From Bigelowiella natans CCMP2755 (lineage: Eukaryota > Protista > Cercozoa), in the NCBI GenBank assembly GCA_000320545.1, contig ADNK01000436.1:24587-88586 (forward strand): 64,000 nucleotides of DNA. Reading direction: 5' to 3'. Numbering within the stretch: the stretch's first letter is position 1; each line of letters opens with the position of its first letter. The notes under the pieces were generated by a model that searched no databases, had not been told where the DNA came from, and saw only the letters and a program-made list of their open reading frames with translations. Shown here in pieces: positions 51,360-63,912 of this stretch. Both the position numbers and the translations under genes were made by a program.

Positions 51360-51839
51360 TGTAAGCGCTATTTTATGAGCACGGGGAAATTGATTCCCAT
51401 GGATTTGCACGTGATTAAATCGCAGGCAAACTGAGATTCTGGTTAGATATGCGAGAGAACATGATGCTACTCTGACGCGTGACGTCGTTTGGTTAATAAC
51501 AGTGATTGCCGAATGAAATGGCGCAGGTGCGCTTCATGCAAGCAATGTCATCGCACGTTTTAGCCTGTGTCAAGCCACACAAACTGTCGTTGTTACCGCA
51601 AGCATTGCATATCCAAATGGGCCGCGATCCCATGCTAGCATGGTAGCATGCATGCACGTGCACATCTATGTGTGCGTTAACAACAGCTCTTAATGTGATG
51701 TGTTTTTACAAAGGCAAATGATACATTATAACATAATGATGAACATATTATGAAAATAGCTAATATAGCCTCGCTCGCTCAGTCATTGTGATAATTGTGC
51801 CATATCTGGCATACGTCTATGAAAAGGGGACGTCCGTTG

Positions 51840-53642
51840 CTAATGTATGGCTGCCGCGTACTCCTTCTCGACAGAAACGAGTTTATTGTAGATTTGGCGC
51901 GTCTCCTCACGAATAGCCGCCATCGATTCAGGATCTGTGCTTGTCGGCATCTGGACATTCCCCCTGATTGATGTATCTGCAGTGAGAATTTGGAACACCT
52001 GCTTCCCGCCCCCCATAGCCACTCATATTAGCTAATAAGTGGTACGGTGACTAACGAACAAAAATCATCCTGTGGTACTCCAGCAGCAGTATTAGCAGAG
52101 TAGCAGCAGACGCCGCACGACAAGGCGTCGAAGAACATCCATGCATATATGATGATACCGTATCTTGAGCTTTAGAAGGCATCTCCTCAGCTCCATCTCC
52201 ACGTCACGGGCGGAGGGACGCTTCGAAGGGTCAAGTGCGAATAGTTTCCTCCAAATCGCCAACGCACGCCCCATCCTCTTCTCAATGAGCAGCTCGCGGA
52301 TCTGCCGAGGGATAAGCTCACCTGCCGTCACCCGTTGGATGAGGGACCCGGTGTTCTGGAGAAGGAGGGGGGCGGGGGGGTGAGTGAGGAAGGGGGGAGG
52401 AGGAGGAAGGTTAGAAAGGATGGCAAAGCAGAAAATTGCCTATTCGTCGCTCTTCTAATATGGTGGCTCATCGGAGTCATGCACGATGAGGATGATGATG
52501 ATGATGGTGATGACGACCAGATTCTGCTCCTGCTCCTTCGCGATTAGGTAGCTTTGGATGTCAGTGAAGCCTTTCTCCTCGGACCAGGCGCGTGGCGTTT
52601 TTCCATAAAAGTCCTTTGCGTCAAGCCGCGCCCCTCCCTTTTCAACGAACAGTTTTACCATTGCTAGTCGGTCGTTGAAGCACGCCCAGATTAACGGTGT
52701 CGCTCCTTTCAGAAGAGTATAATGCAGGAAGAGAGCGGGGGCAGGAGAAGGAGGAGGAATGAAAATTAAAATTCAGTAGTTGAACAGACTGACGCCAGGC
52801 AATAACGATAATGACGATATTGATGATAATGATGATGACGACGGCGGTAATGTCTGTGGTTGTGGTGGTGTTGGCGGCGGTGGTAGTGAATATGACATGA
52901 TTAAGATGCAATAAGAGGATGAAGATAAAAAGAGGGCCCATGGTGGCTTCTCTCCATTCTTTTTCCTTTCACTTCCTTTACCGCTGCTCAGGCTCCCGAC
53001 AGCCTCGACGTTCGCCTTCGATTTGATGAGGAGCTGTGCAGCCTCCAATCTGTTCTGTAGGATAGGCTCGAAAAGGGGCGTGTAGCCAAGTGAGTTCTGT
53101 GCCTCAATATCAGCCTTCCGGTCAAGAAGATACTGCACGATTCCGATGTGACCTCTGTGCGACGCCGCATGCAGGGCCGTGGAGTTGCCCTGGTCGGGGT
53201 TTTTCGCTCGAAGATCTGGAAATACGCGCGAACACTGCGTCTCCTCCTTCCGGTCCTCCTTGGCGTCGTTGTTGTCGTCGTCATCATTGCTACCGCCATT
53301 CTTTTTCTCTATCATCACCCTCTCCCTCCTACCCTTTTGCTTGACCGGAAGGCCCTTCTCAAGAAGGGCTCGCGTTTCGTCAAATTTTCCTTTGAGGCAG
53401 TAGTCCCACAGTAAACGATCGACATCGGAAAACTCCTGAGAAATTGGGAAGGAGGGAAAGGCGGAGAGGGTGGGGGGGAGTTACGGTTAGGGTTCTGCCA
53501 ATGTCTGGGTGAGTGTGTGCTATGCTCCCTTCGAAATGATAAAAAACGGCTCTCATTAGCCCTGAAGAAGCTAGACAACACCTAAAATAAGGCTCTTACT
53601 TTTCCACGTTATTCCCTTTCAACTGAAACTCTCTTTGCCGGC

Positions 53643-53682
<40 letters not shown>

Positions 53683-56035
53683 CTCTCTCTCCCTCTCTTC
53701 CCCCCCCCCTACTCACATTCCCCCTCCCTTCCTTCTTCTGTACCCTCGCGACAAGATACTCTACAACGTCGTCGAGCCCCTTCGCCTCTGCCCACATACG
53801 CGCAGAGTTTTTTTTGTCATCCTTTGCATAGACGTCTGCGTGGCCCTCCTCCACAAGCACGCGCACTAGCCCCAGCCTTCGTTTTCCCTTATTCCATATG
53901 GCGCAGATAAGGGGAGTGGCAAGGTTGAGATCGCGGGCGTTGACATCGGCCCCTTGCTGAATGAGCCAGCGAGCCACCTCGACGCTGTGGTTTTTTGCTG
54001 CTTCAAAGAGAGGGGTATGGCATTGACGGTCCTTTGCCTCCAACCGCGCGCCCTTTTCAACCAGGTACCGAACGATGGCTTTTTAAGAATTTGCGGGAGA
54101 GGGAGGAGGGGTGAGGGGGAAAAGGGGGGGGGGTAATTGAGAAGCAGGAATACCGTTTGTTCACCGATGTGTACAGATGTGCGTGTGCGTGTGCGCGTGC
54201 GTGCGTGCGTGTGGAAAAGGTATTTATGCTACGTTGTGGTGGATGCTGCTTGCTTCGAAGTACCGAGAAAGTTACGATGCGCAGCGACTTGTAGGAGCGA
54301 GATAAATCTGATATGAGAGAGGACGAGACGTATTGCTGTTGTTGTTGATGATGTTGATCTTGACGTTGATAATGATAGTCATGAGACTTCGTGATGCATT
54401 GATTACCCTTTCTCAGCGTCACGGGCATTCACAAGTCTGAGGAGGGAGCTTTCCTCCTCAACCTCCTCCAACAACCTCTTCATCTCTGCCAGATTTCCGG
54501 TCGCGCAAGCTTTGAAGATCTCACGCTCATCGTGTGTGAGAGGCTGAAGATGTGCGTCAGCGGGATGAGAAATAGTAGTTTATAATAAATAAATAAATAA
54601 ATATATATATATATATATACCTGATTTATCTGCTAATGTGTGTTGGTGTGCGTACATCGTAACAGTAACATCCTTCGTTCCTCCTCATCCTCGCCCCCCC
54701 CCCCTCCTAGTTCTCACGTTCTATCTATCTATCTATCTATCTATCATCATCGTGGTACCCTAGCGCTTTCCGGGCTTGGCCTTCTATCTTTGCCGACTAC
54801 ATCACGCTGCACCTCCATGGTCATCACGTTCACCGGGTCAAACGAGGAGGATGGGCCGAACGAGGGGGGGGCTTGACTGGAGGAGGTGGTATCGATATAA
54901 GGAAAGACCTCTTCACTATCTTCGTAGTTCTTGGTAGAGGGGGGGGCATCGCCATCCATATCCTCGTAACGAGCGCCGGGAGCGTCGCCATCCATGTTCT
55001 CGTAATTAACGCCGTTGAAGTCTTCTTCACAATCCTCGAAGTTCTCGGTAGAGGCGGGAGCGTCGCCATCCATGTCCTCGTAATGAACGCCGTTGAAGTC
55101 TTCTTCACAATCCTCGAAGTTCTCGGTAGAGGCGGGAGCGTCGCCATCCATGTCCTTGGAATATTTGCTGGCGTCGTTGTTGTCCAGGGCGTTGTTCTCC
55201 CCCCCACTCTGCGACATCGTATCGGAATCGACGCGCTCTATACCGTCGCCTTCGCCTTTGCGCTCATCCTTTCCCTCCTCACCAGAGCTCTCGGAATAAG
55301 ATGATGATACTGCTTTCGGCCTCTGCGCTTCTTCTTCTTCTTCTTCTTTTCTTTTTCCTTTTTCTTCATCCTCCGTCCCTTCCCCCTCTGGGGAAGAGTC
55401 GGTGGCGGAGCTCGAGTTCCCCCTTTGGAAGGGGACGACGTCATCAACGTCGTGTGCTTCATATTTGGATTTACTCCGCAATTGCTGGAGAACGTCGCAT
55501 CCCTTTCCATCAAGCATAGATTCGCAAACCTAATCGGTGGCGGCGGGAAGAGAGTTTTTGTGTGGAGGTTAATGCTGATGCGTATAAAATCAAGGCCGCG
55601 ACATTTATCTTGCCGCATTGATTTTTTGGATGTGGGACAATAAGTCCAAAATGATGAGGATGATGATGATGATGCATTCTTCGATCTCCCCTTCCGCACA
55701 AAAAGAACGGGCTTGCCAGTGGACACGCCAAGGAAGAGCGGTAAATGAGAATGATAAATGAGTCATCCATGTCCGGCTCATGCAACCGACAAATCCATAT
55801 CGAAAATTGTTTGTTGTTGGTGGAGATACATGCGCCGCGCTTTGTCATGCGTATGTACTCAAAAACAGCGACTGAAGTGGCAACACCGATGAGTAGCTAC
55901 TTCTACTATTTAGGCTCTTCTTCCTACCTCACAGAACGTAATGCCCATGCTCCAAACGTCGCTCTTGGTCGAGAAACGACGAGATGATATTACCTTTGGA
56001 TATAGTCGCAGCAACAGGAGAGAGAAGAGAGAGAA

Positions 56036-56070
<35 letters not shown>

Positions 56071-56417
56071 GAAGAGAGAGAGAGGAAGAGAGAGAGAGGA
56101 AGAGAGAGAGAGGAAGAGAGAGAGAGGAAGAGAGAGAGAGGAAGAGGGGGGGGGGGACAGAAAATGAGGATAAGGGTGAAATAGGATCAGAATCGAGATA
56201 ACATCATCACTTTTCTTCTATCGAAAGTCGGTAAAAGCATCATTTTAGACAGCCCTCAAAAGTCACACCTCTGGAGGTTGCGAATACGGAGTGATCCCCC
56301 CTTCGGACACATCCAACACAAGCGAATCGACCTAAATCATAGGGGGGGCGTGGAGGCGCAAGAGATGAGATTCCCGTCTCATTTCCTCTAATTCTTCACA
56401 CATGCATGTAAATATTG

Positions 56418-56456
<39 letters not shown>

Positions 56457-57681
56457 ATGTGAGCCCACTCCCCCTCCTTAAAACTAGCAGCACACCAGCA
56501 CCTTCTTATCGGGGAGGACACGAGCTAAGTCAAAGTCCGTGATGAGAACCCTTTGCTCATGAAAGAGCACATTGCGTGCCGCGATGTCCCTATGGATGAT
56601 TCCGAGATCGTGCAAGTCCGCCACACCGGCGGATATCTGTATCATAGTTCGCAGGAGGAGGATGCAGAACTTGGAGAGAGGAGGAAAATGCAGGACAAGG
56701 GGGAAGAAGGAGAAGGAGGAGGGGGAGGGTGGGGGAAGGGGGAGGAGCTTATTATGGACATCGTCTTTGGCGGTTGCAAAACTGTTTTCGCCTGTACTTA
56801 GTCAATTACTTCCCCTTCTTCCACAATTCTATACTCGGGATTGTGTTTTCTTGTTCGTGGTTGCAAATCAGTGATACACAGCAAAAGTATGACTACAGCA
56901 ACATAACACTCACCTCTTCTTGGTCCGCCCCGTGCCAACCCCCCAACCCCCCCGGGCTCCCCCGGACCACCCCCCCCCCCCCCCCCTTCGCGGCCTTCTT
57001 GGCCTTCTTGTAGGACCTCTTGAGGGCGAAGAGCAGTCACCAGTAATGTGCGAAGGGTAGTCGCAGTAGGAGTATCCTCCGCCATGGCCCTAGTAGAATG
57101 ATATTGATGTTGTTGGTGACGTTGTAGTGAACATGGTGATGATGATGATGACGACGATTATGAGGAGGACAGTAGTAGTAGTAGTAGTAGTAGTAGTAAT
57201 AGTAGTAGCTGTTACTTGTGATGTTCCATGGCCGCCTTTTTCCTCCTTTCTTCTGGGTCCTAGCGCCAGGGCGCGCAGGACGACGAGATAGCTGCACATG
57301 CGCTCCCAGGCCACGCTGTCTTTCCATTTCTGTGTGAGATACGAGGAAGGAAGAGGAGGAGGAATAGGAGGGGAGAACACATGACAGTGATGGTGATGAA
57401 GATGGTATAGTTGACGCTATGAAATATCTAAAACAATGATATTTTCATGCTGGTGAAGAACTCGCCCCCCCCCCCCCCCCCATCCCCTACTTACCTTAAG
57501 CGCGAGGTAGGAGCCACGGTACTGCACCATAATGACCTGCTTGTACTTTCCCTGTCTTGTCACGCCACCGTGTATTTCGAGCTCATCGTAGTTAATGAGG
57601 AGGTCTGGAAACAGTGCTTTGGACGCCCAAGATCGGAATCTCTGTGAGTTCCAAAGGTTCTCCTCTTTCGCTTTCAATACA

Positions 57682-57734
<53 letters not shown>

Positions 57735-58299
57735 GGCTTTTGAGCTGCATTGAATACCCACCTATAGTAGAATGTGATAATATAATACCCTCGTAGTAAA
57801 TCTAGCACGGCAAAACGACGATGACGACTTAAGACAATTCTCCTGAGCACCACTTACGTTGGCCTTTTTCTTCCTGGTTGGCTGCCTTCGCCGCTTTGTC
57901 AAGCTTCGTCCGAAGAGCGCTCATCTCGCCGTTCCACTTCGCAACCTCGCGGATGTAGGAGCTCATTTCGAATGACACACCGTGGCTACAGGAGGAGCAG
58001 CACCAAAACCAAATGCATCGGTGGATGGTCATCAATGTATGCATATTCTCAAAATAGTCAATTTGTTAGAACCCAGCTCATCTCTCTTATTTTTAATAAC
58101 AGAATCATATATGCTGTTGCTGCTGCTGCTGCTGCTGTGCGTGCGTGCATGCAACGCAACAACACATCGCACACAGTGCGACATATTGCTTCTTCGCACT
58201 TGTCGCGGTCGAGTTTGAAATAGCGTCGTATGTCATCGATATAGCTTGAGAAGCCTGCGGCCGCCACCTAAATGTGATAATTGATTATTTAGAGCGATG

Positions 58300-58341
<42 letters not shown>

Positions 58342-59377
58342 TATTATCTGCTAAACCCCATCCTCAGCTGCGAAAGAAGATCCCTCCTCTCCCACCTCCT
58401 TCTCGCCTCACTTTAAGGCAAGGGGAAGATATCTCCCTATCGTCGTAATCCCCATCAAGATCATCATCATCATCATCATCATCATGATCATCATATTTAT
58501 CAGCGCCACGAGCAGAACCTTTTTCGCATCCAGATCGACGAAGTTTGCACCCTCCCTGTCTGCTGTACTGGCTGCTTTGCTGGCTGCTTTGGTGTGAGCC
58601 TCCAATACTAGTCTGAACATACGCGCATCATGATCGATGAAGACCTCGTTGAGACCCTGCGTAGATATAGGCCGACGGAAGGATAGAAGAGCGGGAGGGG
58701 GGGGGGAGGATTGCTTGTAAATCACAGAGTTCTCCAGTCCACACACGGAAATAATAATGATGATGAGAACATTGACGGCAATGATAGCAGCGATGATGAT
58801 AACAATGGCGTTTGTAGCACGCACGCAACTGCTGTTAGTGCTGGTGGGAACAACAAGCTGCACACCTGCCAGTAGGCCCCCCTTGCAAGAAAATCCGTCG
58901 AATCGTTGTTGGCGCTCTTGTCCATCGGTCTTAGTTTTCGGGCAAGGAAAAGGGAAAAGCGGGGAGGGGAGGGGAGAGAGAGGGAAAGAGTGAAATTTCA
59001 AAAATGGTAGGGAGACGGCGCGGGTGACATATTCTAGTTCTAATCGAGGAAACGTTAAAGAAAAGGATATTATTTTGTCTTTTCTCCCCCTTCTCACTTG
59101 CATTGAACTCCAATTCTCTCCTCTCTCTCCCCCTCTCCCTCCTTCGCCTCTTTGCCTTTCACCTTGGGTCGAAAATAGCTCCAAGAAGGGTGTAAGGGTG
59201 GGAGAGGAATGGGCCTACCTTTGCCTGCACAGTTATTTAGCTTTAAATATATGGCCATGAGTCAACAGATTTATTTATGCGTGTGTGTGTGTGCGGCCTC
59301 ATTGATTTCCCTTTCTGGAGCGCGCGTATTTTATGTACTACCCCCCCCCTCCCCCCCTCGCACGAAACACGCACACA

Positions 59378-59446
<69 letters not shown>

Positions 59447-60876
59447 CTGAATGATCTTCCCAAGGCAATTGAAAGTGGCTATAGCCTCGGGGTCAATAAG
59501 CGGCGTCGATATCACACCCGCCCCCTCCAGGAGCCGCAGAAACGCAGGGATGCTCTCGAAGTACTGTTCGGGCCTTCTCCTCTTCTTGCCCCTCCGCCTT
59601 CGGTTCTGCTCCCGTATCTTCATCTTCCTATGGAACCGGTATCCTCGGGCCGTGCACTCCAGCCAGACGGTGCGGATGGCGTAGCGGTTTCCTTGCAGAT
59701 CGTAGATGACCTGCTTCTGCGACAGAGCATCCTTTTCCTCCATCTTGTGGAGGTACCGCAGGGCGAAGGTGCCGGAGAGGCGGGCCGACAGCTTCACGGC
59801 GAACAAGCCGTTGCGCGCGCTCGCGCGCGTATATCTGGCAGTTTAGTGTTATATGCTGTGTTTCGTGGGGGTGGTAAATAACGATAGCGGCGCTGATGGT
59901 TGGAAAGCAATGTGATAGCATTTCAGGGAGAGGGAGGAGAAGACGTGCTAGCCATCGCATCCATCTCCTCTCTCTCCCTCTCCCTCTCTCTCTGCGTGTG
60001 TGTGTTTGTGTATGTGCGTGTGTGTCTGCAGCATCATATAAAGTAAAAACGCGTGCATATGTGTGAGTTACGCTACCCCCCTTCCCCTCGCCTCCCTCCC
60101 TCCTACTCCCCTCTGGCTGCTCACTTGTGGTTGAAAAGATGCTCGAGGTGCGAAGTGTTGTCATGAAGATGCAGCCACGGCTGGACGAAGGCGCGGGGGG
60201 CTCGGGGCGGGCGAGCGATCATCGGGTAGATGTGGCTTGCGAGGCGCTCGAACGGCCCGAAAAGGCGCAGAAGTCGCGCAAAGCTCTGTACGGTGATCTG
60301 GTCTACATGGCCTAGGATCATGCTGAAAAACCTCGATTCGTGGATTTCGTATATCAGCTCGCGCTTCTTTATCTGGTAGAACTCCGACTTCGACTTTCTG
60401 ATCTGCTGAATGCTGAGGCCTGTTGTAACAGTATCATTTTGCCGGGGTGGCGGGGAGGGGGGGGGGGGAAGGGGTTCGACGTTGGTCTCTGTGTCGTTGT
60501 GGTGATGGGGAGGATACGAGGGGGCAGGTGAGGGGGGGGGGGCGGGGCGGACGACTCTCCTCCTTACACCCCCCCCTCTTTCTCTCCTACTATTGGTATG
60601 GAGGGATTGTTGAAGCAGAAGATAGGGAGGCGGACATGTGGGCGTTTTGTTCTTCTTCTTACCCCATCTTGCCTCAATCGCCTGGTTGTAGTCCAGCAAG
60701 CTGTGGAGCAGCGTGGTCACGAAGCGTGTCTTTGCCACGGTCACGACAGAAGGACCGAAGTGCACCTCCCAGAAGATCAGGGCGTGATTTACCTGAGGCA
60801 TGGCATTCACAAGGGAATATTTATCGTATGTGCATGTAATATAATATCATAGAGAGAGTATGAGGGTGGGGGTAAT

Positions 60877-60915
<39 letters not shown>

Positions 60916-60946
60916 TATCATCATATAACGAGAGCCCGCGACTATT

Positions 60947-60978
<32 letters not shown>

Positions 60979-61522
60979 AATCATGCGAGGGAATAATCAT
61001 ACACTGCTGGTCTACTATCGCTACCACAATCACCACCACAACAACAACGACAAGCGGAAGCGGAAGCAGAACCAGAAATGACACCTTTGCCTTCTTCTTC
61101 CGGTCTTTGCGCTCCTTGTGTTCGTTGAGATAGCTTGAGCTCTTCTCTTCCCTCCCTCTTGACCGTCGACCTAGTGTCCCTCTCTCCTCCCTGCCTCTTC
61201 GGCCTCTCCTTACCCCTCCCCCTCCCCCTCTTCCCCGCGCACAAGCACATGCACATTTTGACCAAAAGGGTCAGAACGGTGATGAGGAAGAGGACGCCGA
61301 AGAGGAGGATTGATGACAAGTCCACCGACACCCACTCCAGCAGCGTCGAGGGGAGCGTGTAGAGCTCTCGCAGCGTCGCGAAAGATAGGGTGGGGACTGT
61401 GTCAGGGAACAGTATGTTCAACGGGCTGGAGTTCGTCGGGAGAGTGGGGAGCGGGGAGGAGGAGGGAGGAGATGTGGCAGTGAGAAGTTAGAAAGAAGCA
61501 ATGCGTTTTTACTCCACGCACA

Positions 61523-61580
<58 letters not shown>

Positions 61581-62563
61581 GAGAGAGCGAGAGAGAGATA
61601 GACACACGCACACATCTTTGGAGCATAATTTCCACGCAAAAGCACCAAAGTGAAATGTTTCAGATAATACGAGAAGTACATCACAGGAAGCAACACATGC
61701 TGAGACGCCCCATCATCTAGCGAAAACAGCAGTTGCAGTAGCAGTATCAGTAGCACTAGCAAAGCATGTAGCTGTGCGGGGATCTCACCGCAAAATCCCA
61801 AGAAATACGAATAGCGAGTCGATAGAGGCGTAGTATATGAGGGAAAAGCCTCCAACCAGGAACGGAGCCACCGCAACAAAGCTGATGTAGCGCCAAGAGG
61901 AGTGCTGCTTCCTACCATCCGCCTTCCACGTCGCATTCTTTCCTCCGGACGATGGAAGAGGGCTGGGTGGGGACGAGGAGGAGAAGCGGGTTAAGAAGGG
62001 GGGGTCATTTTTACTATCAGGCTGGTGACGGCTGCTGGTGTTACGGCTGCTGGTGTTATCAAAGGCGCTCCCAAGAAGGTTTCTCGTGCTAAATTGCTGG
62101 GCCAAAAGGGGAGGTTCGAGTGATTGTCCCCAACCCCCTCGTCGCATCCTTGGCTCCTCGGAATTAAATTTCGAGAGCACCGGAAATGCCCCCGGTAAGG
62201 GGATCATGAGCGTTTTGTTCTTCAGGATGGAGGGGGGCTGGACGGAGGAGGGCTGGATGGAGGAGGCCTGTTTCTGTTGGTCATCTTCTTCACATTGAAG
62301 TTCTCGGTGCACGCGCTCAAGCTCGCTCTTGACAATCGCGACGCGCTTGCGGCTTCGCATCTGCTCCTCCTCTGTTCGTGTCTTCTTTTTCACCTTATCC
62401 GACCACTGTAAGACCTGGTTCCTCAAGCTCTGCATCGATGGGGCCTCAAGTAGTGCCTAAACGGTTAGATCAGGTGATAGGATGACAACGTTTAGTGTAT
62501 AATAACTCTTTTGAATTATTTTATGTAAAAATTATACATATATATGTGTATGTATATAAATAA

Positions 62564-62597
<34 letters not shown>

Positions 62598-63912
62598 TCA
62601 TGCTTGCTGGATTACAGCATCAACAGCATTATGCAAATTGATTGCGTGGGCGACGGAATGACATTTTTACACGAAAGTAGATACGGCTCGGCTCGTATCT
62701 CCCAAATCATCCTTGTCGGTCAGGAAAGAGAGTACTAATAAATCTCATCTCGCGACACAGCTAACCACGGTGGTGGGCAATGCTCCTGTCATGAGACAAA
62801 GCTCATCGGTGCTTTCTATGCTCAATGTATTATAACACTCCATAGCTCTTTTTAGTGCGCTGCTGTGAGTATGGACTCTTCCTATCATCGGGCACCTTCT
62901 GCATTTCCTCCAGTGTAAGTCTCTTCTCCCTTTTCTTCCTGAGGAAGCCCTCCCTGTCTCCAATACCATCGCCGTCCTCGTCCTCGTCGTCATCAACATC
63001 GTCGTCCTCGTCCACCGCAAGGAAGAAAATACTACGGAGATAGCCTACAACCGCGTATGTCAACAGGGCCTGATGCCAGGGAGTAGAGAGAGTCAACAAA
63101 GGTGGATTCTCTATTTTCGTGACCGCCGCTGCTGTGTTCGACCATGATATCGATGTTGTCATCATCACCATCATCATCATCATCATCATCATCTCATCGC
63201 CAAATACACCCTCATCGTGACATGTGATCATCGCCATCGTCGTCATCATAAAGGTTACCAAAGCTCCCGTCTTCAGCATCCAGGCATTGTCGGCCTTCAA
63301 GATCCACGCGTAAAAAAACCCTTGCGCGGTCAGAGCCAATCGAGATCGAATGACAAGCAACCAGTAGTAACGCCTTAAATAATACGATGTACCACGATCG
63401 GCAGAAGGACAGAGAGTAATTTATGGGTAGGAGGTTAATATAGCTCGTAAACCCGAATAAGGAGCCTTCCTCCCCCCTCCCCCCATCGCAGAGAGTGAAT
63501 AAATCAAGCATGCGACGGATACTCTATATTTTATGTTGAGACCCTTCCCAATCCTTCCCAACGCCCAGATAGATTACTTGTGGTATCTAAGCCACGACAG
63601 AATGAGTCTTTTCTCTTCCACTTCCTTATTGCAACTGCTGCGGCTGCCGCCATCGCCGTCGTCGCCTCCACCTTCTCCGCTGGAATTATCAGTGTCCGTT
63701 CCTCCAAATAACAACACGTCGAAAACCTTGATCCAGAAGAGGATGGCATTCCAAGTTGTGCTCAAGCAGCCCGATGATTGCCTAGCAGGGCGGGGGATAA
63801 GATTATCACAAAATTTTTTGGTAATGGTAATGCACGCGAAGCTCACTCTGATGCAGCCTCTCCATCTCGTCTCCTGCGGCTCCTTCTGAATCGCGACTTC
63901 AAATTCCTGCAT
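51840..63912 (-). CDS. Multi-TM, SH2- and BTB-containing tyrosine-kinase-like protein with ankyrin repeats inserted in the kinase domain (5' end probably beyond the window)
   Basis: Minus-strand order: hydrophobic TM segments (63400-61250); EF/SH2-like (FARLLRLFGPF, QPWLH, GLFAVKLSARLSGTFALRY); BTB_2-like (IATFNCLGKII|AKVGPFLSHPYTLLGAIF...VFIDHDARMFRLVL); kinase YLALK, HRDIAARNVL (56571-56594), DFD, PPE, KSDVWSMG; acidic tract; two ankyrin clusters; WRKLFALDPSKRPSA; stop at 51840. Confidence 0.75.
54905..55156. repeat. Coding 78-bp tandem repeat (26 aa, MDGDAPASTENFEDCEEDFNGVxYEx)
   Basis: Unit starts at 54977, 55055 and 55133 (period 78), with a degenerate copy at ~54905-54970; inside ORF 54747-55517(-). 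Confidence 0.9.

Follow-up and report, generated by a model that had tools for sequence, protein, structure and literature searches.

An apparent ankyrin insert between helices F and G of a tyrosine-kinase-like domain in Bigelowiella natans

Introduction

Large inserts in protein kinase domains are known, as are fusions of kinases with ankyrin (ANK) repeats. In the class III and class V receptor tyrosine kinases (RTKs), such as PDGFR, KIT, CSF1R, FLT3, and VEGFR, an insert of 70–100 amino acids that contains no folded domain lies between subdomains V and VI, that is, between the two lobes, and the YxxM tyrosines carried by the PDGFR insert are used as docking sites. SRPK and Sky1 have a spacer between subdomains VIb and VII, and the CMGC insert of the MAPK, CDK, GSK3, and CLK kinases is an element of the C-terminal lobe (C-lobe), near helix G, which serves docking. 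Herein we describe a gene of Bigelowiella natans CCMP2755 located on the minus strand of a 64,000-nucleotide stretch of contig ADNK01000436.1 (assembly GCA_000320545.1, positions 24,587 to 88,586; the whole stretch is hereafter called the window, and positions are counted from its first letter). Judged from its sequence, this gene appears to hold a folded repeat module between helices F and G of a kinase domain, which would be a new arrangement.

Charged, repetitive inserts have been described in Plasmodium kinases, reaching 570 residues in the FIKK kinase R45 (PMC526369). These inserts and the SRPK spacers have in common with the B. natans gene that a catalytic domain tolerates an insertion of hundreds of residues, but they are low-complexity spacers at other positions, and none has been described with folded repeat domains. 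The insert of the class III/V RTKs is similar in being long, largely disordered, and inside the catalytic domain, and its YxxM motifs have their counterpart in the YEDM, YENM, and YEDM found here. It differs in that the B. natans insert would separate subdomains IX and X instead of V and VI, is 643 amino acids long, and contains two ankyrin modules. The CMGC insert, which is also present in MAPK-like paralogs of this genome, occurs family-wide between helices G and H and comprises tens of residues, whereas the break in the present gene would precede helix G and has no second instance among the loci examined. Ankyrin repeats and a kinase are united in one chain in ILK, RIPK4/ANKK1, DAPK1, TNNI3K, LRRK2, and the Giardia Nek-ANK proteins, as well as in two other B. 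natans genes, C1358 (ANK repeats followed by a kinase) and C2758 (a kinase followed by an acidic tract and ANK repeats); in all of these the repeats are outside the catalytic domain, while here they would be nested inside it. In our search of the literature, we found no work on this gene and no kinase described with ankyrin or other folded repeat domains nested inside its catalytic fold.

Results

Expression and splicing of the gene

The genome searched in this analysis was the 91.4-Mb assembly, composed of 3736 contigs. RNA data for the span 51700–57699 consisted of Logan contigs from three independent studies (X1, X3, and X4) and of raw RNA reads (X22). Approximately 20 sequencing runs contained ~45% of the words from this 6-kb stretch, which is the level expected for spliced RNA. 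The RNA contigs of the three studies showed that the gene is expressed and rich in introns. Eleven intervals were skipped by the contigs and, after shifts of one or two bases, all of them were canonical GT..AG introns of the minus strand. Over 56671–51701, zero differences were observed between the RNA contigs and the genome.

Splicing brings kinase subdomains VIa to IX, an acidic tract, a pair of paralogous ankyrin modules, and a tail exon together in one open reading frame. When the exons from 56671 to 51840 were joined in silico from the genome sequence, they yielded 848 codons, from FCILLLRTMIQ.. to ..AAAIH, and the sole stop was the terminal one (51840). The chain starts with the exon encoding subdomains VIa–VII (56502–56671; FCILLLRTMIQISAGVADLHDLGIIHRDIAARNVLFHEQRVLITDFDLARVLPDKK), which is followed, across a junction at 56329/56500 found in X1, X3, and X4, by the exon of the activation segment and subdomain VIII (56269–56331; VDSLVLDVSEGGITPYSQPPE), with its junctions in the same three studies, and by the exon of subdomain IX, or helix F (55928–55993; VISSRRFSTKSDVWSMGITFCE), which ends at a codon boundary. 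The junction 55527/55926, with depths of 39.9, 50.8, and 33.1 in X1, X3, and X4, respectively, connects the latter to the acidic exon (54759–55529), an open frame of 257 codons with contigs on both sides of an internal tandem repeat. Downstream are ankyrin module 1 (53744–54543), encoded by the exons 54543–54407, 54307–54264, and 54078–53744, which are connected by RNA junctions, and ankyrin module 2 (52518–53435), encoded by the exons 53435–52982 and 52705–52518. They are followed by the tail exon (52159–52355), which starts at a codon boundary, and by the last coding exon with the stop codon (51840–51963; GNVQMPTSTDPESMAAIREETRQIYNKLVSVEKEYAAAIH). The junction between these two exons (51962/52158) was detected in X1, X3, and X4, and also in two raw RNA reads of X22.

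The junctions 54543/54759 and 52518/52355 were obtained from the contig coordinates (181 and 26 unplaced letters, respectively) and not from a direct listing; both have canonical GT..AG borders and leave the reading frame intact. For each run, one contig covered 55037–51701 and another 56671–55127, and the sole break between them lay within the 78-bp tandem repeat of the acidic exon. At 51863, in the last coding exon, one X1 contig departs from the genome and continues with 255 letters absent from the window; the transcript may have another 3′ end, or the contig may be chimeric.

The sequence-only reading of the window, which preceded this work, had described subdomain IX followed by an acidic tract of ~250 amino acids and two ankyrin blocks, and all these elements were found where it had placed them, on the minus strand and spliced in frame. 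It had also proposed that RNA be examined across 56000–51840, where three studies now show GT..AG splicing and one frame with a stop only at 51840.

Kinase core and its family

The exon of subdomains VIa–VII matched PF07714 (PK_Tyr_Ser-Thr; stop-free piece 56502–56669; E 3.3e-11; 43.4 bits, cut-off 23.1; profile positions 104–152), as did the exon of subdomain IX (E 5.3e-4; profile positions 176–196). Against a family profile constructed from 15 paralogous kinases with long open frames, taken from the HRDIACRN family of this genome, the two exons scored 38.6 and 22.4 bits, respectively. The exon of the activation segment and subdomain VIII was collinear in both hmmsearch and hhalign. The HRDIACRN family is a group of tyrosine-kinase-like kinases to which at least 126 exons of the genome were matched, and its members were the closest relatives of the VIa–VII exon in a search of the own genome, with up to 51% identity. 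The gene is a divergent member of this family, not included in its reciprocal list.

The catalytic loop (HRDxxxxN, subdomain VIb) is present in the exon 56671–56502 as HRDIAARN. In place of DFG the protein has DFD, with the Asp retained and the Gly replaced by Asp, and in place of APE it has PPE, with the Glu retained and the Ala replaced; both motifs fall in the correct column of the hmmsearch and hhalign alignments. Also retained are the Asp of subdomain IX in helix F (KSDVWSMGITFCE) and the Arg of DPSKRP in the tail. In all eukaryotic protein kinases, the Glu of APE/PPE pairs with the Arg of subdomain XI. Subdomain VIII reads ITPYSQPPE and does not conform to the conventional tyrosine kinase (TK) motif P-[IV]-[KR]-W-x-APE, which in the TK group accompanies the loop HRDLAARN, though the loop HRDIAARN is TK-like; no substrate class can be read from these motifs, and the protein may be either an active enzyme or a pseudokinase.

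Acidic tract and ankyrin modules

The insert between FCE and NTGS comprises 1929 nt, or 643 codons, with phase 0 on both flanks, and is made up of the 257-amino-acid acidic exon, ankyrin module 1 (172 amino acids), and ankyrin module 2 (214 amino acids). The acidic exon encodes 69 Asp and Glu residues versus 24 Lys and Arg residues, and has low hydrophobicity. Its first ~10 residues (VCESMLDGKG) complete helix F and the KGK loop, as hhalign pairs GKG with the family kGk, and the insert proper would therefore begin right after them. This refines the position given in the sequence-only reading, which had located the insert in the alphaF–alphaG region, at a site unlike that of PDGFR and VEGFR; the insert of 643 amino acids between subdomains IX and X agrees with that location.

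Inside the acidic exon, the 78-bp tandem repeat (54977–55156; 2.3 copies, 98% matches) encodes acidic units of 26 amino acids, ..NGV.YEDMDGDAPASTENFEDCEEDF.., with the three YxxM motifs YEDM/YENM/YEDM. Since the RNA contigs break in this repeat, its copy number may vary.

Both ankyrin modules were recognized by Pfam. Module 1 matched PF00023 (E 2.2e-18; 65.8 bits, cut-off 21.1) and PF12796 (E 7.8e-15), and comprises three ankyrin repeats flanked by a cap helix at the N-terminus and a cap at the C-terminus. Module 2 matched PF13637 (E 7.3e-14) and PF12796 (E 2e-12), with 52.0 and 47.9 bits for cut-offs of 22.7 and 27.3, respectively. These ankyrin matches, above the Pfam gathering thresholds, came from the stop-free pieces 53744–54076, 52983–53435, and 52518–52703. 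Modules 1 and 2 are paralogs of each other (Smith-Waterman score of 220 versus 31.7 ± 5.3 for shuffled sequences), and module 2 has an extra acidic loop relative to module 1. No close donor of the modules was found elsewhere in the genome, where the best match was 44% identical and generic.

Relationship of the tail exon to the kinase C-lobe

The tail exon encodes 65 amino acids (NTGSLIQRVTAGELIPRQ...LFALDPSKRPSARDVEMELRRCLLKLK), which we read as subdomains X–XI, with SLIQRVTAGELIP as helix G and ALAIWRKLFALDPSKRPSARDVEMEL as helices H–I. An a-priori test of this assignment was carried out with hhalign against the paralog family profile, with shuffled and natural controls. Tail residues 33–52 (AIWRKLFALDPSKRPSARDV) were placed on columns 234–253 of 257, with a score of 29.8–30.5 (P 1.3–3.3e-4). 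The maximum among 100 shuffled tails was 23.1, versus 29.8 observed, while the highest scores were 19.9 among 40 natural fragments and 17.4 among windows of the insert; true kinase tails that had been held out scored 34.9, 58.1, and 78.3. When the insert was removed, subdomains VIa–IX and the tail aligned collinearly up to the last column, with SLIQRVTAGELIP on the family helix-G motif, and the score of this alignment was 149.5 versus 137.8 ± 2.3 for shuffled tails (maximum 143.8, n = 80).

When subdomain IX was extended instead by residues 1–70 of the acidic exon, the alignment confidence was zero past GKG, so that no second X–XI segment follows directly after IX; nor did the RNA contigs reveal a stop or a separate gene between the IX exon and the tail. 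Among the 103,049 residues of the six-frame translation of the window, the pattern DP..RP was found a single time, in the tail (DPSKRP). In protein-language-model features, the nearest named clusters were PK_Tyr_Ser-Thr (kinase C-terminal) fragments (0.89), which was taken as a lead only. A search of the own genome with the tail returned only the tail itself and no paralog of it.

From these alignments, we consider the tail to be the likely source of subdomain XI and probably that of subdomain X as well. The earlier statement that the end of the kinase C-lobe appears only in the tail is thereby upheld in part: hhalign to the own-genome paralogs supported it, and Pfam, HMMER, and phmmer against the PDB did not. 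Since the tail aligns to subdomains X–XI and stands 643 amino acids after IX, the insert would exit the fold in the alphaF–alphaG loop, a loop in which the paralogs show a variation of ~14 amino acids.

Paralogous kinase loci

The paralog C2758 (2039–4558 of the extracted locus) is a single open reading frame of 839 amino acids. The kinase covers columns 1–239 of 255 of the profile, and a D/H-rich acidic repeat stands in place of the DPxxRP end. Eleven ANK repeats and a stop codon follow, and no kinase tail was found downstream, making C2758 an ordinary kinase-then-ANK protein that has lost the motif of subdomain XI. Twelve further kinase loci of the genome have contiguous subdomains X–XI. The split is therefore a singleton among the loci examined.

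Upstream exons and the gap in the assembly

The mRNA reaches at least 3 kb further upstream, as judged by a 3476-nt X3 contig, the end of which corresponds exactly to the lengths of the presumed exons of the N-terminal lobe (N-lobe; 188 + 114 + 49 + 34 nt). The first of these (57495–57682, minus strand; ..LEIHGGVTRQGKYKQVIMVQYRGSYLALK) putatively encodes subdomains I–II, as assigned by position and pattern; it has junctions at 57329/57495 and 57682/57858, the latter splicing it to an upstream exon that ends at 57858 in the RNA contig. The next exon (57216–57329, minus strand; KWKDSVAWERMCSYLVVLRAL..) has canonical GT..AG flanks and would correspond to the alphaC region. Together, they read ..HGGVTRQGKYKQV..YLALK and then KWKDSVAWERM.., and no recognizable glycine loop was found in them. 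The 49-nt exon (57041–57089, minus strand) ends in X3 with a loose end at 57041, followed by a GT donor at 57040, and the mRNA continues into sequence absent from the assembly; the 30 letters of this loose end were found neither in the window nor in the genome.

Beyond 57041 the mRNA holds at least 34 nt more (..HITVDPGGNILPL, subdomain IV-like), and ahead of 56671 it holds at least 39 nt more (..GVHDDDDEEE). Neither stretch was found anywhere in the window or in the 91.4-Mb assembly, so the genome sequence is devoid of exon sequence in the interval 56672–57040 (minus strand), by position that of subdomains IV–V, which holds a run of 17 C (56970–56986). RNA depth was zero at 56700–56899. The many poly-C "joints" seen in raw reads at 56967–57487 look like homopolymer artefacts. 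At 57037–57041, the X1 and X4 contigs show a 3-nt skip relative to the assembly and an X3 contig splices at 57041, a difference that may stem from alternative splicing, from allelic variation, or from an error in the assembly.

Further upstream (57832–63420, minus strand), Pfam found no domain at E ≤0.1 in the long stop-free pieces, including no SH2, EF-hand, or BTB domain. Several hydrophobic stretches in this region resemble membrane helices.

Discussion

Our preferred reading, in which we have moderate confidence, is that one gene gives rise to one main mRNA and one polypeptide, a tyrosine-kinase-like kinase with its C-lobe broken in the loop between helix F and helix G. Several results weigh against it. 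None of the listed contigs spans the repeat at 55037–55127; the depth is continuous across this break, which falls inside one open exon. For the tail, no Pfam family was found at E ≤10, alone or with its flanks, and no kinase was retrieved by phmmer against the PDB. In hmmsearch with the family profile, the tail obtained 6.6 bits (E = 1) and ranked third in the six frames of the window; it added 0.5 bit to the score, an increment equalled or exceeded by 172 of 500 shuffles. The helix-G part of the tail was not significant by itself. The same split was not found in any paralog among C2758 and the 12 further kinase loci, and no ortholog was retrieved when the tail was compared with 1.84 billion representative proteins. 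The motifs DFD, PPE, and GGVTRQG are degenerate, the candidate N-lobe exons (..HGGVTRQGKY..YLALK and ..WERM..), examined for the glycine-rich loop, the VAIK lysine, and the alphaC glutamate, matched neither Pfam nor the family profile, and the N-lobe is partly missing from the assembly.

Much of this also favors a different view, in which the gene encodes a truncated kinase remnant ending after helix F, the tail is unrelated and helical or tetratricopeptide repeat (TPR)-like, its DPxxRPSA is coincidental, and the protein is a scaffold composed of a membrane part, a dead half-kinase, an acidic tract, and ankyrin repeats. The silence of Pfam, HMMER, and the PDB searches on the tail, the unrecognizable N-lobe, and the degenerate catalytic motifs are all in line with it, and the paralog C2758 is a precedent, being a family kinase in which the last segment is gone and an acidic tract with ANK repeats comes next. 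Among the 1.84 billion representative proteins, the only matches to the tail were 18 TPR proteins (best E 7.7e-21), neither the protein itself nor an ortholog being retrieved, and hhalign of the tail to the repeat profile of the best match gave P 9e-7. That profile, however, was picked post hoc, after a scan of 2.4e11 residues, and the match was therefore treated as a warning of chance resemblance and not as homology. TPR homology of the tail was rejected, as the scores sum 8–25 repeats of 9–12 bits, each single repeat match is far below significance in a library of this size, and the Pfam TPR models miss the tail at E ≤10; only one unit-length stretch is TPR-like, not several tandem 34-residue units, and a lone TPR-like hairpin would be unusual. 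Searches of a representative library with queries as short as 65 amino acids can be a trap, in that tiny E values may arise from summed weak repeats. The kinase test of the tail, on the other hand, was specified a priori and was positive and collinear, and the Glu of PPE, partner of the Arg of subdomain XI, is retained. We regard the remnant as unlikely. About equally unlikely, in our view, is that separate products dominate and the fused form is one isoform among them, these products being an ANK-plus-tail protein that starts in the intron 55530–55927 (first ATG at 55517), a truncated kinase produced by intron retention, or a compact kinase produced by skipping the six insert exons. An X1 contig of 345 nt (55502–55846, depth 23.6) does extend beyond the acidic exon into the intron 55530–55927, but it was found in one study only. 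The 3′ part of the transcript is 1.4–2.2 times deeper than the kinase part in three runs (89 versus 40, 72 versus 51, and 52 versus 33), a further point against our preferred reading, but this could be due to 3′ bias of the libraries. Skipping the 643 codons would keep the frame given the phase-0 flanks, but no IX-to-tail junction is present among the reported contig junctions, a comparison in which contigs cannot reveal rare isoforms either way; the IX-to-acidic junction itself has a depth of 33–51 in X1, X3, and X4. As for two genes misjoined by annotation or a misassembled genome, the assembly does have a defect 700 bp upstream, in that part of the mRNA sequence is lacking beside the C17 run, but RNA contigs of the three studies show, independently of gene models, how the exons are ordered and joined, and these contigs match the genome without differences over 56671–51701. 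An artefact of this type is very unlikely.

If the C-lobe is indeed split as we propose, the core would be closed by helices G–I, supplied by the tail, packing on helices E and F located 643 residues earlier. The insert would leave the core where helix F ends, as an acidic and probably disordered leash of ~245 residues, and would come back by way of two rigid ankyrin modules. Module 2 would be tied to helix G by about ten residues (..YLIAKEQEQNL/NTGS/LIQRV..), and because of this short link it should lie beside the helix-G/activation-segment face. The asymmetry between a long leash out and a short link back would ease closure of the fold geometrically. The helix-G/activation-segment face docks substrates and regulators, as in PKR–eIF2alpha, PKA-R, and CMGC docking. 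In the mechanism that we prefer, the ankyrin pair would be a built-in docking or gating arm on this face, and the tyrosine-bearing acidic repeats (YEDM/YENM) could act as a tethered pseudo-substrate or as phosphorylation sites. A substrate-recruiting or autoinhibitory arm is thus plausible from the predicted geometry. More tentative, and in our opinion rather unlikely, is the extension by analogy with PDGFR, according to which this would be an independently evolved rhizarian kinase-insert device, with an ankyrin docking or gating arm and with the YxxM tyrosines of the leash phosphorylated by its own kinase; it would then be the first folded repeat domain to be described within a protein kinase fold.

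If the preferred reading is true, whole domains can be inserted at the face of the C-lobe that docks substrates, which would offer a natural template for kinases engineered with built-in binders, and the insert with its YxxM tyrosines would represent a convergent RTK-like design outside animals. If the core is instead a dead remnant, the gene would exemplify the decay of kinase genes into scaffolds, in a lineage whose ANK-kinase repertoire is large and evolves fast.

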